The notes beneath the pieces were generated by a model, which worked only from the letters and a program-made list of their open reading frames with translations, did not search any database and was not told where the DNA came from. Position numbers and translations under genes: made by a program. From Ylistrum balloti (taxonomy: Eukaryota), in contig NW_026782093.1 of the NCBI RefSeq assembly GCF_031769215.1, positions 248,001-312,000 on the forward strand: a stretch of DNA of 64,000 nt, in the 5' to 3' direction. Positions 1,166 to 56,569 of the stretch are shown here, piece after piece. Position 1 is the first letter of the stretch, and the number at the start of each line of letters is the position of its first letter.

Positions 1166-1449
1166 CGAAGACATTCAAACTGTTTGTTTCATGCCAAACT
1201 TTATTTACATCGATCGATATCAATAATATCATATCTTCCACGAAGAGTCAGGCTTGTCAACACTTCCAATACTTTGTGTTGTATAAAGAATATTTTGTAA
1301 TGTTCAACAAACAATGCTGAAGGACGTATTATTTTTACTACGTGTTTCCATTATCTTCTTAATTTTTCTTCTGATTTCTTTCGCCAAGGATGTTTTCGTC
1401 GCTTTTTCTGATAACCATAATGGAACTTGACAATAGTGTGCATAAGAAA

Positions 1450-9300: not shown

Positions 9301-10405
9301 TGTTTTCGAAATCTTAATAAAATTTATTCCGATGTTGTGAATTGAATTTCTGTTTGATGAATTTCAAATATTTTTATCATGTATTCCTTTATTCATAGAC
9401 TCATACCAAACAGACGATCACGAAAAAAAAATGAACAAAATAAGTAGTGAAATAAATACGAAAATGACGATATAACCAGTGTATTTCTCATAGTGGCAGT
9501 CCCATTAAGTCAGCGTTGAAATACGAATCGCCATGATGGTTTCCCTGGTTGCTGATAGTATATCGAATATGTGGTTACCCCAGTACTATCTTGTAGTTTT
9601 TTTATCAATAAGGCATCGCTGAGAAAAAACCGACAACGTTACTTAGTGTTTTCCTTACCGACTCCAAATCCGATCAAAAATGTCCGAGGGAAAATATCAC
9701 TAGATGTACAAGCACTTTCTACAATGAAGTAAGAGACTTTGACAGCCATTCACAAAACACAAGACAGTGATTATTGGTTTGTGTAGAGTAAGTCAGAGCG
9801 CAGGTCCCTGGATACTTATGAGACGTTTATGAGTAGTATTCTATTCAGTTCTAATTAAATATTCTTATAAAGCTTCGTTGAAGAGTGGACGAAAACTCTT
9901 TGAAGTTCATTAAAATCTACATACTTATTCCACTTCTTTCGTAAACAAAGTATCACAATACGACTGAAACCTAGATTTGATAATACTTAATAGAATGATA
10001 AATAAAGACATACATATGTGATTTCAGTTACATTCCTCTTCATTGCCTGCCACAAGCATTTCAGAACTAAGACTGATTAGTTCCAGAACGGTGCAAAACC
10101 GATTGCGTAGGCCTGCATCCGCCCGCGTTAGCCCGCTGTTAGTCCAGATTTATTATCGATTCACAAATAGTGCCTGTCCTAAGGTACTGTTAACAGTCAC
10201 ATATGAACCCAGATTTCACCTTGCTTGTAGTGACGGTCGAGTGCTGGAGAATACATGGAATAGTCCTTTTGATTATAATGGAAGTCACCTTTACCAATGT
10301 ACGCTACAGAGACGAAATTATTCATCATCACATTCTTTCATTCATCCCGAATTATTTTGTAGCATGACATGTTTAACGCTTAGCATATATATATATATAT
10401 ATATA

Positions 10406-11242
10406 CACCCAAGGGATAAAGAAACACAGGGTGACATTATTTGCAATATCATGCGAACGTGTTGTTCAAACCAATGAAAATCGGTCAAGCATCTTTCTAG
10501 ATTACAGTGCACGTAGTCCTGTAATGAATGTTGCATTATGGTATTACATGAAGATGTCTTCCGCAGAAAACACGAAACGTAAACATCTCTTTCACAGCAG
10601 TGTTGTTACATTAAGTTACACTGCTCGTCGTACCATTAAGTAGTTTTCATAGAGACACATCATTTTCCGATATTTTGGTTACTTTCTGATAGCAAATACA
10701 GGTTGCCAGACATTTCGGTGTCCATATTAACACTCTAGAATGTCGTCTTAGACGCATAATGGTAACTGGGCAGATTGCTAACAGATCTGGGTTTGGGGGT
10801 CCGCGCGTGACGTCACAAAATCAGGACAGGTTTATTCGTCTCGCGCATTAGTGAAATCGTCACCTTACTGTCACAGAATCTGCACTTCATACCATTGGTA
10901 CTCATCGCCGTCCTATTTATGGAAAAACTGTAAGGAAACCGATTGTGGGAATTTGATCTGCGGGCTCGTCACCGGTTTGTAGGTCTGCTCCTTACCGCTG
11001 CTCGTCGCCAGAGTCGTAAGGTTTGCTTACTGATGAGTCCCGTTTTACCCTGTTTCACCCCGAGCAAACGTTCGACGTCGTGTATACCGACGTCATGGAG
11101 AATGTTATGCCGACTGCTGCGTAGTAGAGACAGGTAGATTTTGGGGTGGATCGGTTTTGGTGTTGGGGAGGAATCTCACATAGAGTTAAATCACTATTGG
11201 CTGTGGCAGCGGGTAGTTTAACTTCCGCTAGGTATAGAGATG
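10406..11242 (+). mobile_element. Tc1/mariner transposon remnant, truncated at the duplication junction
   Basis: Follows a (TA)n tract. Broken frame gives VARHFGVH, GGPRVTSQNQDRFIRLAH, TETVRKRL, TDESRFTL and WGGISH..KSLLAVAAG....RYRDE, which are typical Tc1 HTH and first catalytic Asp motifs. The left end is inferred. Confidence 0.8.
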
Positions 11243-11247
11243 AGAGA

Positions 11248-11347
11248 TGTTATATGTTTACCGGTTAGACGAATCATCACATGGGAGGAAAAAAGACTCG
11301 CGAAAAAATGTAAAATGAAAGAATCTGATCCAACAGCAGAAAGTTGA
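11248..11347 (+). pseudogene. Truncated remnant of the last coding exon of the + strand MCT gene
   Basis: Collinear with 1066-1165 (ICLPVRRIITWEEKRLAKKCKMKESDPTAES*), with the stop in the same position. It has no acceptor or upstream exons and is fused directly to Tc1 sequence. Confidence 0.85.
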
Positions 11348-11414
11348 CAAAGAAATTTAAATTGTTTGTTTCATGCAAAACTTTATTTACATCGATCAAT
11401 ATCAATAATATCAT

Positions 11415-12481
11415 TTCTCTCATATCCCGCCATATTGGATAGAGTTTGCCCATGTAAGATAGCTATGTAAGAAAATTCTATCTTACATGGGCAAACACGT
11501 GCGCGGATTAATCTGTGTTCAGGAGAGACAACTCTTACAGTGTCATTTTTTATGTCACGGGTCATAAAAACACACAGTCGCTGAATACTTACAAGACACT
11601 GAATGACAGACAGAAGTACATAATTTCCAATATCTTGTCAAACACAAAAAGCTCCGAATTAATTCCATCAAACCGAACACCATCCTCTGCCACCATTTCA
11701 TCAACTTCAACAGTTACTAGGCCTACATCTGATGTCACAGTGTGTTTACCATCGTCATCACAAGAAAACACGGTTAACACCTTCAATCCTGTATCACGGA
11801 AACAATCTGAAACTCGCATCGAATCCTTGTTTGCTGGTTCTCACATTGAAAATTGCCAAATCACCGTAAATATCACCACAAATGTTCCACCACCCAAACG
11901 TCGTCGAATCATGGTGATCGAGAGCGACAGCGACTCGGAATAGGAGATCGTGTGACGTCACGCCTTGAATTTATGAATGGAATTCCTTTGATTATGGTGA
12001 CGTCATGTCAGCGTCACAGTAGTTTGAAAAAATGTCAAAACAGTAAAAAGATACATTGATTTATTTCTTAAAATGGTCAAATATGTGATTTTGATCATAC
12101 ACATACTATATAATCACACAGAGCATTTTTGTTTTTTTTTCATCTGCGAATAATATATTCATCCTGCAATATACCGAAAAATGGTTCGAAATTTGACAGC
12201 AAACTGAAAGTTTGCAAAATATGGGTATGCTCGTTAAGAATATCCACTTCGTTTTTTTTTTATAAAAACCTCGGATAAAAAAAATGAAAAAAAAAACAAA
12301 TGAAGATAATAGCCGACCGACTGTCCTTTTCCCAAAGTTTTGGTAAAGATATGAGAGAAAAAGACTCTTTCATTATGTGTGTATGTAAAATAGGGATATT
12401 CCACCCGAGGCTCTGCCGAGGGTTTTACCATATTTTGTAACCCCGAGGGTGAAATATCCACGCATATGAAAGAGTCTAATA
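11415..12481 (+). mobile_element. Non-autonomous Crypton-like (DUF3504 tyrosine-recombinase family) element
   Basis: Absent from the matching site in unit A (~1231). ORF 11515-11943 carries VTGHKNTQSLNTY (the YR C-terminal H...Y catalytic segment), the F....I.NC.I.VNI motif and a KRRR/acidic tail. Perfect 13-bp inverted repeats at 11414-11426 and 12348-12360; hairpins near both ends. Confidence 0.7.
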
Positions 12482-12654
12482 ATCTTCCACGATGAGTAAG
12501 GTTTGTCAACACTAAAGTATATTTTGTTATGTTCAACAAACAATGCTGAAGGACGTATTATTTTTACTACGTGTTTCCATTATCTTCTTAATTTTTCTTC
12601 TGATTTCTTTCGCCAAGGATGTTTTCGTCACTTTTTCCGATAACCATAATGGAG

Positions 12655-13340
12655 CTTGACAATAGTGTGCATAAGAAATATCCGATTTCAATACCATTTG
12701 ATATCTATATTGAAGTGTGAAGTGTGTATCATGAAAAATATCGAAATCAAAAAAGAAATGTACGGAGAACTACACCATGGCAGAAATTCTGGTTGACAAT
12801 ATCTGATGGAGTATGGTGGTTAATTCTTTCCACAGACTACAGGTATACCTATGTGAAAAAATTGTGACCCATCTCCTGGCTGACTTGTTTTTGTTGTTTT
12901 CATACGAGGCTAAAGTCATCTAAGACTTAACAAAAAAGGTCACAATGACCTTGCAAAGTCCTTCAGTCTCATTTTCAGATATAATGACGGCTTTAAACAA
13001 GGAGAGATTTATTGACCATATCCATTATATGCGTCCTCCAGAATTTGAAATCAAGGACAAGATAGACTCTTCTTTAACGGCGGCTTACCTCAATTATTTT
13101 CTACAATAAAACCAACAGGAGTTGATTTCTATGAAGCTGTATCATAAACGTGATAATTTCGAATTCCCTATTGTGGATTTGCTATGTTTAGAAAGCAACA
13201 TCATTGCATCTAGTTTCATCGAGCTTTTAGTTTTATTTAATATTATGTTAACATATCAGTAATGCCTTTGTAGTGGTACCTTGAACACAGCCGTTACGGT
13301 CGTAGAACTCTTTTGAGACTGTATGGAGAGTTTGAAAAAC
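12655..13340 (+). mobile_element. Penelope-like RT remnant, duplicated copy (more complete)
   Basis: Same as 1450-2030, plus MKLYHKRDNFEFPIVDLLCLESNI, which matches the TKLYDKRDDFNFPIVNFPFL.SNIP motif. This segment is largely deleted in copy A. Confidence 0.78.
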
Positions 13341-19003: not shown

Positions 19004-21626
19004 CGTCTGAACTTGAAACATCGTTGTACATGTAAGTCATATTCACAATTCCTGAACTACAATCGTAGGTTTTCAAATACTTTTAAAAGTTTAGATATGC
19101 CTAATTTATTTACAATTTCAAAAATATACATAACGCAGTTTCTTCCAATGCGCAGTCACAGAATTAATATACTCAGGTAAGTTGATTTATTTTTAGATTC
19201 GTTTTCATTGAGTAATATTATGATTTTTTAATTGAAGTAAAAAACGAATGAGCGTTATGATATAGACTTTACAGTCTGTAAATGCGGAAAAAATATACAG
19301 TATTTTTACTTACCTGTATACCAACGAGTTCAAAGCCAGCTTTCGACAGTTTTTGCTTTCCAACCCCACCCATCATCCCCACCCATCATCCCAACCCATC
19401 ATCCCCCCTCATTTGTGTTCAGTTTAGATAATAGAAAACATGTCCTGCGTGTGATCACTAATATAGATACATTTATACAACAATATATTTTTTCTGTAGT
19501 TGATATCGTCAAGCTAACCCAGCCGCATTCCGCAGAAAGAAAACAATGATAATGATTAAATGGGGATCGTAATAAACAGACTTATAATTGGCGAGCATCT
19601 TGCCTACCTGTTTTTCTGACAGACAATCATTGTTACATTTGTATCAATGGCAAGACTGAGTAGTATACTTTATCAATTTATATAAAACAAATCTGACGAA
19701 TATTTCTGCGAAAATTTTGTTCCCAATTTTTTTTCAAATTATGATCGCCATTGACTTCTCAGCCTATAAAAGAGAAAATAATATTTTGTATTTTATAAAG
19801 CAGTTGATGACCTACCTGCAGAAGTAATATGAGTAAATTCACCCTTTATTTTGTCCAAGTTTCCGTTAATCGTGGTCGGTTTTGAAAAAAAGATATCCTC
19901 CACGTATATTCCGGTAAAAGAATAACAGTGAAACTGGAAATGAAGATTCGGCGTCCTGAGAACCTGCTATCAACATTGAGAATGTGTTTACCGATCCGTG
20001 CTGTTCTGAAGGTAACTTTAGGTATATGACACCGTTTGTATCTGTGGATAAAGAGGTAATAAATAACGTGATATTGTCAAATAACCATCTCAGGTTAATA
20101 TTACGTAAGAAGTAGGTTAACATGTTATTGCAGTTTATATAATTCGTACGTTGATCTTTCATGTTCACATTCAGCGACCAACAGTTGTAACAGGTCTTTT
20201 TCTGGCACTCAGAGAAAAGCAACAACATAGATTTAATACTTTGAACAGTTTTAACTCTTTGTTGGTGTTTTTCTCGCGCGCTCTAGCAAAATTGATGTTG
20301 TCATTGTTAGGGAAAGTTGATCGGAGTGATATAAGTTACCCTTACTTGTTTTCAGACCTAATTTGTTTTGAGTACTTATTTGTTATGTTTACAACATGTT
20401 CAAAATGGTATTGAAATAAAGTTGATATCAAATTAACAATTAAAGTGTTATTCAAAAATGTTTTATGGAATGTCAACACTAAAAGACCATATGTAGTAAC
20501 CCTTTAATCATCATTTATGTTTGCATCGCATTATATTTTCAGTCACAAATGGTAGTATTGAAAAAAAAAATTAAATACCATGTCCTTCGTATTTATACCC
20601 ACAGGAATTCAAAATCAAGGACACAGCTGACTCTCCTTCGCCAGCAGCTTTCCACGAACATACATCGAAACAAGTAGCATGCTTTTGATTACCAGAATAT
20701 GAATCCTCCTTTTCTAGATAGTAATTAACCTTCTTCACCAGCAATGTTTAGAAATCTTAATAAAATTTATTCCGATTTTCTGAATTGAATTTCTGTTTGA
20801 TGAATTTCAAATATTTTTATTATGTATTCCTTTATTCATAGACTCATACCAAACAGACGATTGTGGAAAAAGTTATCGAACAAAAAAAGTAGTGAAATAA
20901 ATACGAAAATGACGATATAACCAGTGTATTTCTCATAGTGGCAGTCCCATTAAGTCGGCGTTGAAATACGAATCGCCATGATGGTTTCCCTGGTTGCTGA
21001 TAAGAGATCGAATATTTGGTTACCTCAGTACTCTCTTGTAGTTTTTTTTTATCAATAAGGCATCGCGGAGAAACAATTGACAACGTTACTTAGTGTTTTC
21101 CTTACCGACTCCAAATCCGATCAAAAACGTCCGAGGGAAAATATCACTAGATGTACAAGCACTTTCTACAATGAAGTAAGAGACTTTGACAGCCATTCAC
21201 AAAACACAAGACAGTGATTATTGGTTTGTGTAGAGTAAGTCAGAGCGCAGGCCCCTGGATACTTATGAGACGTTTATGAGTAGTATTCTATTCAGTTCTA
21301 ATTAAATATTCTTATAAAGCTTCGTTGAAGAGTGGACGAAAACTCTTTGAAGTTCATTAAAATCTACATACTTATTCCACTTCTTTCGTAAACAAAGTAT
21401 CACAATACGACTGAAACCTAGATTTGATAATACTTAATAGAATGATAAATAAAGACATACATATGTGATTTCAGTTACATTCCTCTTCATTGCCTGCCAC
21501 AAGCATTTCTGAACTAAGACTGATTAGTTACAGAACGGTGCAAAACCGATTGCGTAGGCCTGCATCCGCCCGCGTTAGCCCGCTGTTAGTCGATTTATTA
21601 TCGATTCACAAATAGTGCCTGTCCTA

Positions 21627-22016
21627 AGGTACTGTTAACAGTCACAGATGAGCCCAGATTTCACCTTGCTTGTAATGAGCGTCATCTGTTCTCAGGTACT
21701 GTTAACAGTCACAGATGAGCCCAGATTTCACCTTGCTTGTAATGAGCGTCATCTGTTCTCAGGTACTGTTAACAGTCACAGATGAGTCCAGAGTTCACCT
21801 TGTTTGTAGTGACGGACATCTGTACTCAGGTACTGTTAACAGTCACAGATGAGTCCAGATTTCACCTTGCTTGTAATGAGGGTCATCTGTTCTCAGGTAC
21901 TGTTAACAGTCACAGATGAGTCCAGATTTCACCTTGCTTGTAGTGACGGACATCTGTTCTCAGGTACTGTTAACAGTCACAGATGAGTCCAGATTTCACC
22001 TTGCTTGTAGTGACGG
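21627..22016. repeat. 67-bp minisatellite, ~6 units
   Basis: Units start at 21627, 21694, 21761, 21828, 21895 and 21962 (aggtactgttaacagtcacagatgag...catctgttctc); the last is partial. Confidence 0.95.
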
Positions 22017-22452
22017 TCGATTGCTCGAGAACTGAAGGCCCGGAGAATACATGGAATAGTCCTTTTGATTATAATGGAAGTCAACTTTACCAATGTACGC
22101 TACCGTGACGACATTATTCATCATCACATTCTTTCATTCATCCCGAATTATTTTGTAGCAGGATATTATACTGAACATGCTAAGGTGGCAGCAGAACGTG
22201 TTACTTTTGCCTGCTATGTCAATAGTTTTATCTCTAATCGAGAATATTTGGGATAAAATGAAGTGATGTCTACATCAGGAACCAAACTCAACGCAACGCA
22301 ATGAGTATATAAATCTCGTGTGATAAGCAGTAAATGGTACAAATTATCCCAATATTTCGTACATAAGATTACATGTATACTGTCTCGCATGTTTAACGCT
22401 TAGCAGATAATACATTCTTGGCTATTTACCTACATCATCCTATATATATATA

Positions 22453-23497
22453 CCCAAGGGATAAAGAAACACAGGGTGACATTATTTGCAATATCTTGCA
22501 AGCGTTGATCACAAACAATGAAAATCGGTCAAGCAACTCTCTAGATTACAGTGCACGTGGTCCTGAATCGAATGTTGCATTATTGTATTGCGTGACGATG
22601 TCTTCCTAAGAAAGCACGAAACGGGAAAATCTCTTTCACAGCAGTGTTGTGACATTAAGTTACACTGCTCGTCATACCATTAAGTAGTCTTCATAGAGAC
22701 ACATCATTTTCCGATATTTTGGTTACTTTCAGATAGCATTAAACAATGGCACGGCTGACGGAAGTTCAGGGGGTCAGGTCATTGCGATGTGGTCAGGCCA
22801 GGTCAAAGGCTAATATAAGTTGCCAGACATTTCGGTGTCCATATTTACAAACTAGAACGTCTTGTTAGATGTCTAAGGGAAACTGATAAGGTTGCTGACA
22901 GACCGTACTGTCACTGAATCTGCCCTTCATACCATTGGTACTCATCACCGTCCTATCCATACAGAAACCGTAAGGAAACGATAACGGGAAGTTGATCTGC
23001 GGGCACGTCAACCGTTTGTATGCCTGCTCCTTACCGCTGCTCGTCGCAAACGACGTCTGGCTTTGGTGGCGGTAATAATAATTCCATTTATGCAGTGGAG
23101 GCGAGTCTTGTTTACGGACGAGTCCCGGTTTACCCTGTTTCGAGCAGACGTTCGACGTCGTGTATACTGATGTCGTGAAGAACGTTATGCCGACTGCTGC
23201 GTAATAGAGACGGGGAGATTTTGGGGTGGATCGGGTATGGTGTGGGGAGGAATCTCACATAGAGTAAAATCACTATTGGCTGTGGCAGCGGGTAGATTAA
23301 TTTCCGCTAGGTATAGAGATGCTCGGCCCCATATAGCGAGGATCTGTCGCGACTTTCTCACAAACAACAATATCCACCCACTAGACTGACCGCCATACAG
23401 TCCCAACCTATCCCCTATTGAGCACTTGTGGGACAAGCTGGATAGACAGCTTCGAAGACGCCGACCTCCCCTGTTACCCTGGCCCAACTGAGAGCAG
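22453..23497 (+). mobile_element. Tc1/mariner transposon remnant (DD34E type), decayed
   Basis: MARLTEVQ start at ~22746, VARHFGVH, WRRVLFTDESRFTLF, VWGGISH and ARPHIARICRDFLTNNNIHPLD*PPYSPNLSPIEHLWDKLDR. Contains stops and internal deletions; no right TIR found. Confidence 0.85.
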
Positions 23498-23581
23498 TCA
23501 GTTTTTTCTTCTCGTGAGTTACCTCCCTTGTCACTACAATACATATGAAACCAAAATAATAATAAAAACTACTTAAAGAAA

Positions 23582-23960
23582 TACATATGGGAGCTTATCG
23601 AACCAAAATTGTTAAATTATATCATTAACTCACATACGTATTACATATGGGAGCTTATCGAACCAAAATTGTTAAATTATATCATTAACTCACATACGTA
23701 TTACATATGGGAGCTTATCGAAACAAAATTGTTAAATTATATCTTTAACTCACATACGCACTATATATACCTATATTGTTTAAAGATATATTTTAATCAC
23801 GCTATACATATGTAATTTTATTGAACCAAAATTATCAAAATATATCTTATATATTTACTACATATGTGAGCTTATGGAACCGAAACAGCAAAAAAGATAT
23901 ATTTTACTCAAATACGTAATACATTGGGAGCATATGGAACCAAAACTATCAGAAGATCTT
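23582..23960. repeat. 60-bp tandem repeat: 3 near-perfect plus ~3 degenerate units
   Basis: tacatatgggagcttatcgaaccaaaattgttaaattatatcattaactcacatacgtat repeats at a 60-bp period in 23582-23759, with decayed copies to ~23960. Confidence 0.9.
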
Positions 23961-32200: not shown

Positions 32201-32444
32201 GAAAGATTCACTCCCTCTATATAATTAACAACTCTTAAAATGTGTTAAAAGATTACAGTTCTAGAACCAGTAGTTGTTTTTAAGATATAAACATTTTGGC
32301 ATTCTTATTTATTTTTTCCATGCAAACCTAAACTATTTCAATTTTACTCAACTTTTTAACCACAGACATTTAATCATTAAAACTTCTGCATATATTAAGG
32401 AATCAATCACCAAGACCAAAAAAAAACGTTAACGCCAGGTTTAA

Positions 32445-32768
32445 GGAGGTACAGTACCTCCTGCATCACAAGATCTTAACTGACGAACCTGTGTTCTCTA
32501 TCTAGCAAAATCTTGTTTGCAAATATGTTTATTGTAAATACCAACTCTGGTAGGAGGTACAGTACCTCCTGCATCACAAGATCTTAACTGACGAACCTGT
32601 GTTCTCTATCTAGCAAAATCTTGTTTGCAAATATGTTTATTGTAAATACCAACTCTGGTAGGAGGTACAGTACCTCCTGCATCACAAGATCTTAACTGAC
32701 GAACCTGTGTTCTCTATCTAGCATAAACTTGTTTGCAAATATGTTTATTATAAATACCAACTCTGGTA
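32445..32768. repeat. 108-bp tandem repeat, 3 copies, each headed by a perfect hairpin
   Basis: Units start at 32445, 32553 and 32661. Each junction carries aggaggtac-a-gtacctcct (9-bp stem). Confidence 0.95.
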
Positions 32769-46400: not shown

Positions 46401-47470
46401 ATTAAGTCAGAAAGACAGCACTCCTTATTTGGTCAACATCTAAATAATTGATATGGCTTAAATGTTGCAAAAAAATATTCACATGTGGATGTATAGTTGA
46501 GAGAAATAAGATTATACAACTCCTGTTTCTTATAAAGAAACACGTCAGAGAGTCAGGGAGTCAGGGACCCTGGTATAAGGCTTGCAGTACAGTTTTCTTC
46601 CGATAGAATTTGGTTTAAAGACAGTTAAATTTATCTGAATTTTGCTTTTTTTAAAAAATCTTTTTCATTGTAAATGTTCGATACTGCCTCCTTACTTAAG
46701 AGAAAAATGAAATTGAAAAAAAAATCCAAATAAAACAGTTACAATAATAAATAAAAATACATATATATATCTTTAATTATGTCATTAATTGGAAATTACA
46801 CTCAAGTTTTCTATTGTTTTCAATGTAAAGTGACCTTATCAGACACAACAGGTGTCTACAGAGAGGGTGGGTGTGTGGAAGTCTATTTCAGACAACAGAA
46901 AATGATCATTATTGCAGGAGTCTGCATGTGTGCATTCCACATCTCCACGTGTCAGATAAGGGAGATAAAGCACCACATTTCACCATAAAATTGTGAAGTT
47001 ATCTCCCGTTATCACCTCAAGAATTACTCATTGTCCGTGAGAGCTGAACATGAATCCCATCAAACCATTTGGGAGATCAACCTTTACTTGCCTATCATGA
47101 AAAACAATTGTAACATGAACCATTTTTCAAGTGATCTATTTAAGATGTAAAATGGTAGCTCTGTGAATTAATACAGACCAACAAAACTAATCAGAATCAG
47201 GCAGATAACTGCAATTTGAACCTAACGTGTCACTATTGACTGCTGTGTTTAACCTTCTATGCAGGTTTCAACCCCCACCCCCCCCCCCAACCTCCCCTGG
47301 AAACTGCCCTTACAACTCCCTTCATACAAATATCATTATACTTGTATTGTAAGCTACTTTCAGAACTTTTATGTCCTTTACATTGTTTCTTTACCCTCCC
47401 CACCATTTCATCCTTTCCTGTTCCTTTATAGCCCTCCCCCATGATTTTTTTTTTCTGTCCCTTAAATTCA

Positions 47471-49170
47471 TAACCCTCTCCAATGTTTCACCCTTTCTAA
47501 CCATCTCCTATGTTTCAAGCTTTTTCCTTCCTTTCTAACCCTCTCCCATGATTCAAGCTTTCTCCTTCCTTTCTAACCCTCCCTCATGTTTCTCATCCCT
47601 TTCTAACAATCCCTCATGTTTCCCATCGCTTTATAACCCTCCCTCATGTTTCCCATCCCTTTCTAACCCTCCCTCATGTTTCCCATCACTTTATAACCCT
47701 CCCTCATGTTTTCGCATCCCTTAAAACACTCCCTCATGTTTCCCATCCCTTTATAACACTCCCTCATGTTTCCCATCCCTTTATAACCCTCCCTCATGTT
47801 TCCCATCCCTTTATAAACCTCCCTCATGTTTTCCATCCCTTTATAACCCTCCCTCATGTTTCCCATCCCTTTATAACCTTCCCTCATGTTTCCCATCCCT
47901 TTCTAACCCTCCCTCATGTTTCCCATCACTTTATAACCCTCCCTCATGTTTCCCATCCCTTTATAACACTCCCTCATGTTTCCCATCCCTTTATAACACT
48001 CCCTCATGTTTCCCATCCCTTTCTAACCCTCCCTCATGTTTCCCATCCCTTTCTAACCCTCCCTCATGTTTCCCATCACTTTCTAACCCTCCCTCATGTT
48101 TCCCATCCCTTTATAACCCTCCCTCATGTTTTCCATCCCTTTATAACCCTCCCTCATGTTTTCCATCCCTTTATAACCCTCCCTCATGTTTCCAATCCCT
48201 TTATAACCCTCCCTCATGTTTCCCATCCCTTTATAAACCTCCCTCATGTTTTCCATCCCTTTATAACACTCCCTCATGTTTCCCATCCCTTTATAACCTC
48301 CCTCATGTTTCCCATCCCTTTATAACCCTCCCTCATGTTTCCCATCCCTTTATAACCCTCCCTCATGTTTCCCATCCCTTTATAACCCTCCCTCATGTTT
48401 TCCATCCCTTTATAACCCTCCCTCATGTTTCCCATCCCTTTATAACACTCCCTCATTTTTCCCATCCCTTTATAACCCTCCCTCATGTTTCCCATCACTT
48501 TATAACACTCCCTCATGTTTTCGCATCCCTTAAAACACTCCCTCATGTTTCCCATCCCTTTATAACACTCCCTCATGTTTCCCATCCCTTTCTAACCCTC
48601 CCTCATGTTTCCCATCCCTTTCTAACCCTCCCTCATGTTTCCTATCCCTTTCTAACCCTCCCTCATGTTTCCCATCCCTTTATAAACCTCCCTCATGTTT
48701 TCCATCCCTTTATAACCCTCCCTCATGTTTTCCATCCCTTTATAACCCTCCCTCATGTTTCCCATCCCTTTATAACCCTCCCTCATGTATTCCATCCCTT
48801 TATAACCCTCCCTCATGTTTCCCATCCCTTTATAACCCTCCCATGTTTCATCCCTTTATAACCCTCCCTCATGTTTCCCATCCCTTTATAACTCCCTCAT
48901 GTTTTCCATCCCTTTATTCCATTGTTTTCCATCCCTTATATAATCCCCCTCCCTCATGTTTTCCATCCCACCCTCCCTCATGTTTTCCCTTTATAACCCT
49001 CCCTCATGTTTCCCATCCCTTTATAACCCTCCCTCATGTTTCCCATCCCTTTATAACCCTCCCTCATGTTTCCCATCCCTTTATAACCCTCCCTCATGTT
49101 TCCCATCCCTTTATAACCCTCCCTCATGTTTCCCATACCTTTCTAACTCTCCCTCATGTTTCCCATCCCA
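47471..49170. repeat. 30-bp C-rich minisatellite, roughly 55 units
   Basis: Unit ccctcatgtttcccatccctttataaccct with variants, degenerate at both ends. It produces the spurious MGNMREGYKG ORFs. Confidence 0.96.
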
Positions 49171-52400: not shown

Positions 52401-53599
52401 CAAAGTCAATACTCAAATCTGAGAAGACTATGTCATTATGATTGTGAACACTTCAATAGTTCACTGTTGAAGAAAACTTTGATGCATTCGTAAGAAGACC
52501 TTATGAACAAATTTGGACACAATTTAATCCCCAAAGTGCCTTTTTGTAGCAAAAACTTCAAGATAAATGTTATACACACCTTAAATGACACATAAATTAA
52601 ATTTTTTAACTTCAAATATTTTAAGAATTACCTCATTTAGAACCATGACCGAGTCCACTTCTATGTCCGAACATACATCCTATGTTACATTTTTCCTTCC
52701 TGAATGGCAGCGAATCATGACTTTTTCGTAGCACACAATTCTAACATTCCAACAAAACATCTATGACATCTAACCATATTCTGTCTCTCTTTATCGCAAC
52801 TCTGACTGTCAAATTCACAGTATCTTATATCTCTCCGCTCTATCCTGGTAGCTCCTGGTGATACACTGCGACAGCCTGTAATTACCTGTAACTTCCATCT
52901 GGCTACAGGTAGACACACCCTGTCTCCTCAACTATTACAGACAATATGTGGCCGAGTTCCCCCTCCCCACCATGACTAGGCACTCTCCCTAGTAAGTTCC
53001 CAGGATCCCCATCACAGCTGCTACTGCTGCTGCTGTGTTTGGGGCATGACAGTAAATATCGCCTAGACAGCTTGGGCTCAAGGGATACAATGCATGCACA
53101 CTCTAGGTTTGGGGATAAAACATTGGAATAATTTCATAAGAATTCTTGGCTATCCATCTATATATTTTTCTGAGGATGATTTCTTTAACTACAGAATTTC
53201 TTCTGAAAAACCCAGTAAAAAGGAGACAAGAATAACCTGAACATGTCTGAGGGCTGATATAACATCCAGCAGTTTCCTCTTGTTAATATACATCAGTAAA
53301 ATGTGTGGGTGTTTTTATCAGAAAATGTTGAAAAGAAACTTTGAATTACCTTGAATAACCTGACATGGTTACCACATGAAAGCATGCCTTTGCTATAAAA
53401 AAATAAACTTGTTAGATGTTTTCACATGAAACTGGTGACATTTAACTGCTTGGCAACTGTATAATAACCTTTGATCTGTGTCCTAATTTTAAAATACTCT
53501 AAGTTAAATAACTTGTGTAATGGAATCATTAGATTAGTTCAGATCCAGTCCATACTTTGAACAAAAAAGTCAAACCAGGAAGCCTACCCATCAATTCCT

Positions 53600-54300
53600 G
53601 AACCTAACACCGAACTGGGAGCTCAACTGGACCGGCTCCTCATCCTAACATAGAACTCGGACAGAGCTTAACTGGACCCTTCCTCATCCTAACATAGAAC
53701 TCGGACAGAGCTTAACTGGACCCTTCCTCATCCTAATATAGAACTCAGACAGAGCTTAACTGGACCCACTTCTCATCCTAACATAGAACTTAGACAGAGC
53801 TTAGCTGGACCCTTCCTCATCCTAACATAGAACTCGGACAGAGCTTAGCTGCACCCTTCCTCATCCTAACATAGAACTCGGACAGAGCTTAACTGTACCC
53901 TTCCTCATCCTAACATAGAACTTAGACAGAGCTTAGCTGGACCCTTCCTCATCCTAACATAGAACTCGGACAGAGCTTAGCTGCACCCTTCCTCATCCTA
54001 ACATAGAACTCAGGCAGAGCTTAACTGCACCCTTCCTCATCCTAACATAGAACTCAGGCAGAGCTTAACTGTACCCTTCCTCATCCTAACATAGAACTCA
54101 GACAGAGCTTAACTGGACCCTTCCTCATCCTAATATAGAACTCAGACAGAGCTTAACTGTACCCTTCCTCATCCTAACATAGAACTCGGACAGAGCTTAA
54201 CTGTACCCTTCCTCATCCTAACATAGAACTCGGACAGAGCTTAACTGTAACCCCCCCCCTCCATCCTTATCCTAACACAGAACTAGGACAGAGCTTAATT
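53600..54300. repeat. 44-bp minisatellite, ~16 units
   Basis: Unit cccttcctcatcctaacatagaactcggacagagcttaactgga, e.g. catcct at 53641, 53685 and 53729. Confidence 0.95.
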
Positions 54301-56569
54301 CCCCATCTTCATCACAACAGTGCCCACCCAAACATCTGATCTAACCCCTTCCCTAGCTCGCCCCCTCTAACCAACTTCCTCCCCCCCCCCTAGCTCACAC
54401 TCACAGCACCCCCTCTAACCAACTTCCTCTCCCCCCACCCCCTTTCCTACTCTCCTCTACACATACAGAAAGCAGTCGATCCCTCCCCACCCTAATTTCT
54501 GATCTAACCAGTTTTCTGTGTAGTTGATAACATCTGTCAGCACATAATACCTGGCTCTATCTGCCTGCTGATTTTTTCTCCATCAGGAAAACAAGATGGC
54601 TGACTAATTTTAAACAGATACTCTTTTTAACAACAGCTTAGTTTCCTTAATTCTTGTTTCATGCTCATTTCCCATGGATTCTGTCGCAATTCTGTATCGA
54701 CAATTGACCGTGTATGTAGATATCTCACTATAACAAACAACTTTACAAGTAAACAATCTTACAGTATATCTTTTCTACAATCAACAAAGCCTTTTTTAAA
54801 AAGCTTTTTGTTAGCTTTTTCAATAGTTCTCCTTAGTCATTTCATATATTTCTTCATGTTTTAATATTTTGTCAAAATTTTTGAACAAAATTGTAAATTC
54901 TTTACAAATATGTTAAACATCTTTCATTCAGAAGTTCCTATCATTTTTGTCCTCGTAAATATGCAGGCCTGGGTCATTATGAATTCCAAGGTAATGAGAT
55001 ATTAGAAATAATTTTATGTAAAATATGTTTTTGAGAAAACAAAATCTGTTTTCAACCTCTTTCATTAAGCTGACAAGCCGTATGGGAGGCCAGCACTGTA
55101 ATGTGTGAGTGAAAACACAGACTCTATTTGTAAAACGAAAACTTTATCAAATCATAGAAATGAATGACCACCTCGTATTATAAACAAAGTCTTTAAAAAA
55201 AGTTCAATTCAACTGAATTTCACAAATCATTCACATTTTGAAGCTGACAAATCATTAAATAAAAGTCAAGTACACTTACCAGCTTGGCACTGTCAACTTA
55301 ATTAAAAGTCAGCTAAATTTATTAACCAAAAAAGTTTTTAATTTTCACTGAAATCTATGATTAGAGATGTGTAAAAATTTATAACGGCTCTCAAAAAGAA
55401 AAAATTCAATGTACTACAACATTATACATATCAAAAGTTATGAGTAGGACCTCTCTGTAAGTTAACCATACTTGGAGCACAGATCTATGTGAGAATGTTT
55501 ACTACACATTTATGTATTAACACAGCTAATGAAAATGTTCTGACATCAACTCTCTTACTTTCACATAATAATGTCTGTCTGACCTCATGAAACATACCGA
55601 AAAAATCAACAATAAATGATTCGATAAGGCAGTATCACTCTATGTAAAAAGATCCACAATTAAATCAACGGAGATATACACAGCACCTAACTCAATTTTT
55701 ATAAATTACACAAAATTCTGTCTTCTATCTTCATACCTCCCATTTGAGTCACAAGTATATTTTATTTATCTGTTTTATTTCTTGATAATAATGACAAACA
55801 AATTGAAAAATGTAAGCTAACATCTCTTATATCCTGTCTTAGAATTGAATTATTTTTTCAAGGGCAACTTATCAGAGAATTTGCAATGAATATGAGGACT
55901 GGTACTTCCCATTCTTACGCATACTACTAATTTTTATCTAAATTGAAACCATTTAGGGTACAATTTTTAAAAGCATTTTCAAAAGTTGTTATGCCAATGA
56001 AAAACATATAAGCATTTTTAAGAGTCGTCCAATCAAAAACAAGTTAATGAAAGTAGAGCGTTTGCACTGACTTGAAGTTATAGGTTACCACACACATTAA
56101 AACCCTGCAGATAGCCCTGAATATAGTGACAAATTGTAATGAACTTTAAGGAAGGCCCTTCCTTTTAATGCAAGGTATTGAAATTCATTTAAATTCTATT
56201 TATATGGCACTTTTCTACTACTATCTATCAAATCACATCTTTTGATACCATCTTTTAATGCAAATTTCATATTTAACATACATCATCTAAGTGTCAGAAA
56301 GAGAGTTCTCTCCAGTTCAAACCACAAAGTACAACTCAGTGCTCATATACCACACACTTTTCACATAGAGATGTAGGTAGAATCATGAAAGGCTTAAACA
56401 TTGTTGTAAAACTCTCTGATTTTGAAGTACAGGTTACCAGATCCACATGTGGTGCAGACCACCTTCTGAGTAGTTAGCTTATCTAGGATTTCAGGAAATA
56501 TTTATTTTCTAAAAGAGCAATCATCTCCTTATACTTTCACTTCTGTTCTGCAAGATGAATTGCAGGTAT

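Follow-up and report, generated by a model that had tools for sequence, protein, structure and literature searches.

The DUF3504 domain derives from the recombinases of Cryptons, transposons for which non-autonomous members have also been described (Kojima & Jurka, 2011; PMC3212892), and the terminal layout of Helitron2/Helentron elements and of Helentron-associated interspersed elements (HINEs) was set out by Bao & Jurka (2013; PMC3627910) and Thomas et al. (2014; PMC4067079). Here, we describe an insert at positions 11415–12481 of a 64,000-nucleotide stretch of the Ylistrum balloti genome (contig NW_026782093.1, positions 248,001–312,000; this whole stretch is referred to as the window and its numbering is used throughout). 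As an internally deleted and non-autonomous copy, this insert belongs to a ∼2.2 kb single-gene mollusc transposon family with a DUF3504-type (CryptonA-like) tyrosine recombinase (YR). We lean towards the view that this recombinase moves the family, because it is the only gene conserved within the shared terminal frame across families and lineages, at a constant position; the unit is too short to hold anything more; changes in the end repeats follow the protein clades; the two-part palindromic target resembles a degenerate core site; and, judged by coordinates, no Helitron Rep locus (0/8) lies near the element ends. Since the layout of the ends is also a hallmark of Helitron2/Helentron elements, the mobilising enzyme is left unproven.

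The family resembles CryptonA (PMC3212892) in carrying a single DUF3504-related YR gene with a catalytic Tyr, in the lack of a reverse transcriptase (RT) and of a target-site duplication (TSD) and in having non-autonomous deletion derivatives that far exceed the coding copies. It differs in its asymmetric inverted repeat of 9–15 nt, 5′ hairpin, long 3′ palindrome and target consensus, and in the Thr that replaces the first His of the catalytic tetrad in the clade of this genome. With Helitron2/Helentron, HINE, DINE-1 and pearl elements (PMC3627910, PMC4067079, PMC7492417) it shares asymmetric inverted repeats with local 5′ pairing, a 3′ repeat directly ahead of a hairpin, a T at the 5′ boundary, the absence of a TSD and occasional tandems. 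In contrast to these, the mollusc elements contain no Rep, helicase or endonuclease gene and no tandem-repeat or microsatellite core; in the insert, Tandem Repeats Finder gives only a two-copy 12-mer inside the open reading frame (ORF). Their palindrome measures 120–170 bp compared with ∼10–30 bp, their target is AWKA-N8-TMWT rather than TT and their internal gene is a YR.

The insert, its ends and its target

The first part of the window (1–23300) consists of three tandem units of ∼11.3 kb, each with an SLC16/MCT-like gene (spacings of 11.2–12.0 kb). The insert lies ∼70 bp past the stop codon of the SLC16-like copy in unit B, the protein of which ends ...KMKESDPTAES. When the region 9.5–13.5 kb was compared with the window by BLAST, 11248–11418 paired with 1066–1236 (91%) and 12513–13106 paired with 1284–1888. 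Compared base by base, the empty site in unit A reads ...atcat/atcttcc... and the filled site in unit B reads ...atcat(11415–12481)atcttcc.... Thus, the insert is exactly 11415–12481 and the target was neither duplicated nor lost, which gives precise limits to the ∼1.07 kb insertion without a clean TSD that had been noticed in a sequence-only reading of the window. A joint that skips the insert in contigs of related samples (11418 to 12513, with 47 letters between) was traced to the paralogous unit A and does not represent excision or polymorphism. The features of the insert and its site are as follows.

1236..1237 (+): empty (uninserted) paralogous site in unit A, from BLAST and base-by-base comparison.
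11404..11407 (+): left target half-site AATA (−11 to −8), which fits AWKA from 25 independent 5′ flanks.
11415..12481 (+): whole non-autonomous family-A copy, internally deleted and with a shortened 3′ palindrome, as delimited by the empty site and by at least 60 genomic copies with the same ends.
11415..11426 (+): 5′ terminal inverted repeat TTCTCTCATATC (5′ asymmetric terminal inverted repeat, ATIR, or subterminal inverted repeat, subTIR); the flanks of 25 copies diverge directly upstream and the repeat is the exact reverse complement of 12348–12359.
11423..11441 (+): small 5 bp stem between TATCC of the 5′ repeat and GGATA, from the DNA fold.
11444..11496 (+): 5′ subterminal hairpin with a perfect 19 bp stem (11444–62/11478–96), fold −21.3 kcal/mol, z −7.9.
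11515..11943 (+): remnant ORF, the C-terminal 130 residues of a DUF3504-type YR ending ...KRRRIMVIESDSDSE, with 82–92% identity to the longer ORFs L043 and L032.
11944..12347 (+): non-coding 3′ region, conserved in other copies (query positions 530–934).
12348..12359 (+): 3′ inverted repeat GATATGAGAGAA (3′ ATIR/subTIR), 122 bp from the 3′ end and the exact reverse complement of 11415–11426.
12362..12477 (+): 3′ terminal palindrome with outer arms AGACTCTTTCAT and ATGAAAGAGTCT, from the fold and copy-by-copy comparison.
12406..12420 (−): conserved hairpin apex CTCGGCAGAGCCTCG, with 98 exact genomic matches and none for the control.
12475..12481 (+): 3′ terminal tail TCTAATA (family consensus TCTTATA); the flanks of 21 copies diverge beyond it and other families end in similar tails.
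12483..12486 (+): right target half-site TCTT (+2 to +5); T occurs at +2 in 20/21, C at +3 in 13/21 and T at +5 in 15/21 flanks.

The motif TCTYTCATWW, noted earlier four times within 1.07 kb, stands where it was first placed (11416 and 12366 on the plus strand, 12349 and 12464 on the minus strand), as do both hairpins; the perfect 19 bp 5′ stem folds as claimed. The whole window holds nine matches compared with 3.1 expected from shuffles, none of which reached nine, and the looser form TCTYWCAT has eight of its 33 window matches in the insert. The outer motif pair belongs to the perfect 12 bp inverted repeat (11415–26 versus 12348–59). In families A and B and in the bivalve loci L065 and L066, GGATAG or AGATAG recurs ∼20 nt from the 5′ end, and a homologous CATGTAAGATAG stem is present in L066. 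The 3′ module of the window copy forms one long imperfect hairpin (−23.7 kcal/mol, z −5.8). It is a shortened, inverted version of the ∼150 bp canonical form of the family, in the minority 'flip' orientation and with two deletions.

Family A comprises at least 60 copies with the same ends and unrelated flanks in the 648 Mb bivalve genome. A 30-mer from the 5′ end has 64 genome matches, a 28-mer from the 3′ end has 51 and a 30-mer across the boundary between 3′ repeat and palindrome has 42, with no matches for the reversed controls. Homology begins exactly at TTCTCTCAT in 25 copies with unrelated flanks and stops at ...ATGAAAGAGTCTTATA in 21; the end motifs, the recurrence of which at other termini had been put forward as a check, are seen in all copies examined. 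A canonical copy is ∼1.24 kb in length; relative to it, two internal segments (∼55 and ∼79 bp) and some of the palindrome are missing from the window copy. The terminal branch of the window copy is long (0.058 compared with a median of 0.015) in an otherwise star-like tree, and the window copy is thus an old member of a family with a recent burst. Six loci (L059–L064) have more diverged 5′ ends and are short and non-coding.

The canonical palindrome has arms of ∼72 nt (−64.6 kcal/mol, z −15.6) that are complementary except at four CCCTCGG(G) motifs, all of which run in one direction, so that a folded form would have two-base mismatches there. Palindromes vary among copies through deletions between the direct CCCTCGG(G) motifs and through inversion of their centre, which gives the 'flip' state of the window copy and of L029; L030 is a hybrid of the two states. 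The two flip copies do not group as sisters in the tree, so that the inversion must have had two or more origins; it may stem from the usual instability of palindromes or from recombination of one arm with the other. Solo palindromes also exist (L009), and in contigs of related samples depth is higher over both element ends than over the interior. At C50:891541–891680, coordinates alone indicate a 140 bp mini-form that seemingly consists of only the 5′ and 3′ ends of family A.

The insertion sites share a two-part consensus. In the independent flanks (25 on the 5′ side and 21 on the 3′ side), A is found at −11 in 16 of 25 and at −8 in 21 of 25 (p = 2 × 10⁻⁷), and T at −1 in 23 of 25; on the 3′ side any base occurs at +1, followed by T at +2 (20/21), C/A at +3, T/A at +4 and T at +5. 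Both strands give one palindromic consensus, AWKA-N8-TMWT, with insertion one base ahead of the right half-site, and the window site fits it perfectly (AATA at 11404–07, TCTT at 12483–86). The half-sites resemble the innermost arm bases (...AAGAG and TTCTC...). Such a palindromic, arm-like target fits site-specific recombination, and the insertion logo looks like a degenerate recombinase core site, in support of the core-site geometry that had been proposed for the element. No TSD was found in two comparisons of empty and filled sites and no repeat flanks 21 copies. The target rule explains why some neighbouring copies abut 3′ to 5′ (L009, L018), as well as the pair at L066:2290–2925, where a short non-coding minus-strand copy lies head to head with a coding copy, their 5′ ends exactly 7 nt apart and forming a perfect inverted pair of end sequences.

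The recombinase gene and its relatives

The ORF of the window copy retains only the catalytic C-terminus of the recombinase, as first suggested; its connection to DUF3504 runs through longer relatives. It is 92% identical to the end of the 226-residue ORF of L032 and 82% identical to the 301-residue ORF of L043, both of which match DUF3504 (PF12012), L032 also with a weak Phage_integrase match; PF12012 scores reach 68 bits for L043 and 89 bits for L044. A Pfam search with the 142-residue window ORF alone gave no match, as the ORF lies downstream of the domain. The protein profile matches human QRICH1 (9hjt) and, in its last motif, aligns HxxR...GH...Y to the Tn1549 integrase (PDB 6emz) in a weak and local match (E = 0.014). 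By this alignment, TGHKNTQSLNTY at ∼11554–11589 of the window ORF, which contains the GH...Y signature, is the box with the nucleophilic Tyr. Among 27 aligned relatives, the residues that are invariant or nearly so include Arg in FGxRG, Lys in TKTRTG, Ser-x-Arg in N(H/T)SxRK, the Gly-His pair and Tyr in NNY. The first His of the R-H-R-Y tetrad is replaced by Thr in families A and B and in several oyster and scallop proteins and is kept in a sister clade (Mercenaria, Mytilus and Littorina).

Two further loci, L032 and L048, retain the 5′ end of the window copy together with more of the DUF3504 ORF, which indicates that the family arose by internal deletion. The longest family-A ORFs (301 and 315 residues) are 5′-truncated and lie in a 5.29 kb tandem duplication (L043 and L050; C124:1410652–1417545). 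An RT-like ORF is present upstream, on the opposite strand. The search for an autonomous partner with the ORF, as had been suggested, was fruitful for a coding sister family, B, and yielded no intact family-A gene.

The family-B loci (C930, C870 and C351/C355) are 95–97% alike over ∼2.2 kb and have different flanks. Each of L044, L045 and L047 has one ORF of 431–525 residues with DUF3504, QRICH1-like and weak integrase matches; no second ORF of useful size and no RT, DDE or Rep gene was found in the ∼2.2 kb unit. The ratio of nonsynonymous to synonymous substitutions (dN/dS) between copies is 0.6–1.0, the pattern of decaying transposon copies and not of host genes. The unit starts with TTCTCCCACCCC, the exact reverse complement of which, GGGGTGGGAGAA, occurs ∼380 nt past the stop codon and is directly followed by a palindrome of ∼155 bp and the tail GATTCTAATA. 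The ORF starts (MEDKSIPHD..., L047:2824 and L045) within the region of the 5′ hairpin, only ∼50 nt into the unit; we speculate that its promoter lies in the flank or is supplied across a joined 3′–5′ junction. The L044 copy sits exactly at a unit boundary of a 54 bp tandem repeat, which provides the second empty site without a TSD. In addition, the L044 copy on contig C930 carries a duplicate of its own 3′ region (L044 reverse complement, 2402–2830; ∼420 bp, palindrome included), inserted ∼70 nt from the 5′ end at a GATA microhomology.

The same frame recurs in other molluscs, for each of which one locus was found through proteins that match the family-B ORF. It opens with a 5′ sequence of 9–15 nt at the very end and a subterminal hairpin, continues with the ORF and then repeats the 5′ sequence as an exact reverse complement, 3–8 nt ahead of a palindrome of 120–170 bp with a conserved apex; a TCTWWTA-like tail of 7–8 nt closes it. 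The repeats of the individual loci are listed below.

Saccostrea echinata (L065): 5′ TTTTTCTCGCATTAT, 156 nt before the start codon; 3′ ATAATGCGAGAAAAA; palindrome of ∼150 bp.
Bivalve locus L066: 5′ TTCTCCCACCTTT; 3′ AAAGTGGGAGAA; palindrome directly after.
Mercenaria (L068): 5′ TTTTATCACATAAAC; 3′ GTTTATGTGATAAAA; palindrome directly after.
Mytilus (L069): 5′ TTTATCACATATTT; 3′ AAATATGTGATAAA; palindrome directly after.
Littorina, a periwinkle (L070, probable): 9 nt match only at the 5′ end; 9 nt match at the same position at the 3′ end; palindrome of ∼170 bp.

In the loci of four other molluscs the recombinase is the sole ORF for a transposition enzyme. The end repeats differ among families, yet they change together at both ends: TTCTC-type ends accompany the Thr clade and TTATCACAT-type ends accompany the His clade. 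By our own estimate, which is not the output of a tool, a perfect 12-mer shared between windows of ∼350 nt and ∼10 nt is expected ∼2 × 10⁻⁴ times per locus. The apex keeps CTCGG-N4–7-CCTCG throughout, with related forms in Saccostrea, L066, Mercenaria and family B. The apex 15-mer CTCGGCARAGCCTCG (98 exact genome matches, control 0) occurs in family A and also follows at least five diverged DUF3504 ORFs; those on C870, C908, C669 and C454 have it downstream in the same orientation. No palindrome was found downstream at the Pecten locus L067 or at L071. Because a full ORF lies within the common frame in family B, in the oyster, clam and mussel loci and probably in the periwinkle, the element's own gene is most likely to be the recombinase.

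Mobilization and alternative explanations

If the recombinase moves the family, it would bind the arm-like motifs at both ends and join the ends into a circle, in which the 3′ tail ...GAGTCTTATA would be directly joined to TTCTCTCAT. The predicted junction, ...ATGAAAGAG-TCTTATA-TTCTCTCAT..., would present inverted arms around a 7 nt spacer and would then recombine with look-alike genomic sites; copies without the catalytic core, such as the window copy, would be moved in trans. Inverted arm-like motifs around a short spacer, first seen in the insert, do recur with family-specific sequences in related families and species. The integrases of conjugative transposons of the Tn916/Tn1549 type are likewise YRs, by which a circular intermediate is integrated at many degenerate sites, and the profile match to the Tn1549 enzyme is weak and local. 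The sites of these bacterial elements comprise inverted end-like half-sites around a short AT-rich spacer and are not known to need long homology; the systems also depend on an excisionase and on arm-type sites, and variable coupling bases are transferred with the element, whereas the 3′ tail of the mollusc elements is constant. Integron attC and CTX phage attP with XerCD are folded-hairpin substrates of YRs. By analogy only, the mollusc palindrome is likewise imperfect, and its conserved mismatches, which fall on the TC centres of the CCCTCGGG motifs of either arm, could distinguish one strand if the substrate were folded.

Several points weigh against this mechanism. No circle junction, excision footprint or insertion polymorphism was found in contigs of related samples, and no intact autonomous family-A copy was found in the assembly. 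No crossover sequence common to the element junction and the target is evident; in the comparison for short (4–6 bp) direct repeats or microhomology between element end and target, the consensus of the 3′ flanks, NTCTTY, shows an imperfect resemblance to TTCTCT at the 5′ end. The first tetrad His is lost in the clade of families A and B, and the architecture in the other species is based on the single loci listed above. Helitron2 elements carry unrelated conserved genes, such as Fanzor, a passenger in those of Chlamydomonas. Moreover, the terminal layout agrees in nearly every point with that published for Helitron2/Helentron elements and HINEs, and animal Cryptons are described as being without terminal repeats, direct or inverted (PMC3212892).

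These points raise the alternative that the element ends belong to a HINE, for which a Rep/helicase gene at another location would supply the mobilising enzyme, with the DUF3504 YR as a captured and long-retained passenger that might help to resolve circles or tandems. The ATIRs of 8–15 bp, the 5′ one 0–2 bp from the end and pairing downstream, are as published (PMC3627910, PMC4067079); the 5′ repeat in the window pairs locally in the fold, the 3′ repeat stands directly ahead of a hairpin, the 5′ end has a T, there is no TSD and copies occur in tandem. Furthermore, bivalve genomes are rich in HINEs with unidentified autonomous partners (PMC7492417), and Helitron Rep domains occur in this genome. 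Against these stand the YR as the only ORF conserved within the terminal frame, at constant orientation and position, in several bivalve lineages and probably a gastropod, and a 2.2 kb unit without Rep. In a limited test based only on coordinates, none of the eight Helitron_like_N loci was found to share a contig with a family-A end or the apex 15-mer. The 3′ palindrome is 5–10 times longer than the reported 3′ hairpin or palindrome of HINE/Helitron2 elements, and the subTIR strings are absent from the supplements to PMC4067079. The target is two-part and palindromic, with its halves 8 nt apart, rather than TT or a T-run, although the comparison with Helentron insertion between T and T is mixed: there is no TSD and T stands at −1 and +2, with any base at +1 and with further specific positions at −11 to −8 and +3 to +6. 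On balance, we regard rolling-circle movement as unlikely, although it is the alternative that merits serious attention.

Two other explanations have far less to commend them. The right end had been read tentatively as either the relic of an end-to-end junction or a separate mini-element, and the latter would make the insert a composite of a ∼945 bp element (11415–12359) with an unrelated palindromic miniature inverted-repeat transposable element (MITE) of ∼120 bp (12360–12481) that landed at its end. The 12 bp repeats alone would indeed form a conventional element with terminal inverted repeats, the palindrome has its own inverted ends, and the solo palindromes, the 140 bp mini-form and the higher contig depth at the ends than in the interior accord with such an origin. 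However, all family-A copies in which the 3′ end is intact remain homologous across the palindrome up to the TCTTATA tail, flanks diverging only past the palindrome; the order of repeat and then palindrome recurs with different sequences in six further families or species; and the empty site shows that all 1,067 bp came as one piece. A composite origin is thus largely refuted and very improbable. Likewise, a single fossil circle junction at the right end is rejected, since the module of 3′ repeat and palindrome, to which the inner motif pair belongs, is constant in every family examined; of the proposed Crypton-like element with YR-site geometry, the DUF3504/YR remnant and the absence of a TSD hold, and these right-end readings do not in the form proposed. 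It is scarcely credible that the DUF3504 piece is a pseudogene fragment of a domesticated host gene trapped in a repeat by chance. The failure of the window ORF alone to match Pfam would agree with this, but the full-length relatives retain the R, K, R, H and nucleophilic Tyr residues that are lost in domesticated DUF3504 genes (PMC3212892), and they are multi-copy with unrelated flanks and decay neutrally (dN/dS of 0.6–1.0). A bacterial-style promoter or terminator reading was rejected on the evidence weighed for these alternatives.

Sequence context and significance

The window is AT-rich eukaryotic DNA (G+C content of 33–42%) from contig C236 of the 648 Mb assembly, and the closest proteins are from pteriomorph and other bivalves. 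Segments 10860–11242 and 22900–23321 resemble, by eye, a fragment of a Tc1/mariner transposase (...WGGISHRVKSLLAVAAGSLTSARYRDE). This stretch adjoins the last SLC16-like exon at 11243–11248 in unit B, where unit A continues as exon, and has high contig depth in related samples. Long arrays of 30 bp and 44 bp tandem repeats occupy 47410–49000 and 53551–54350, with GC skew down to −0.6, and short arrays with units of 67, 60 and 108 bp lie at 21552–22083, 23554–23768 and 32444–32767. The 67 bp unit is single at 10147–10238 in unit A, which indicates that the array expanded in unit B.

A literature search returned no description of the mollusc frame; Repbase was outside this search and the elements may be filed there under another class. 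Comparison of the family copies reveals the ends and hairpins of an animal Crypton-type element together with its preferred insertion site, features that published surveys had not found. The recombination sites of animal Cryptons are left undefined in published work, and the family supplies sharply defined ends, co-varying repeats, a conserved apex, a predicted circle junction and a statistically supported target consensus, from which binding and recombination assays can be designed directly. A broader proposal, which we consider quite doubtful, is that mollusc DUF3504 YR transposons form a distinct structural class of Cryptons with Helitron2-like ends, a folded or cruciform 3′ palindrome and AWKA-N8-TMWT targets, and that some partnerless bivalve HINE/pearl elements are moved by YRs. 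The 'subTIR plus 3′ hairpin' signature, which is used for calling bivalve Helentrons, surrounds a YR gene in several molluscs. Either a similar layout of the ends evolved convergently in two unrelated transposition systems, or a YR has been carried for a very long time by a rolling-circle chassis, and either outcome affects the classification of repeats in mollusc genomes.

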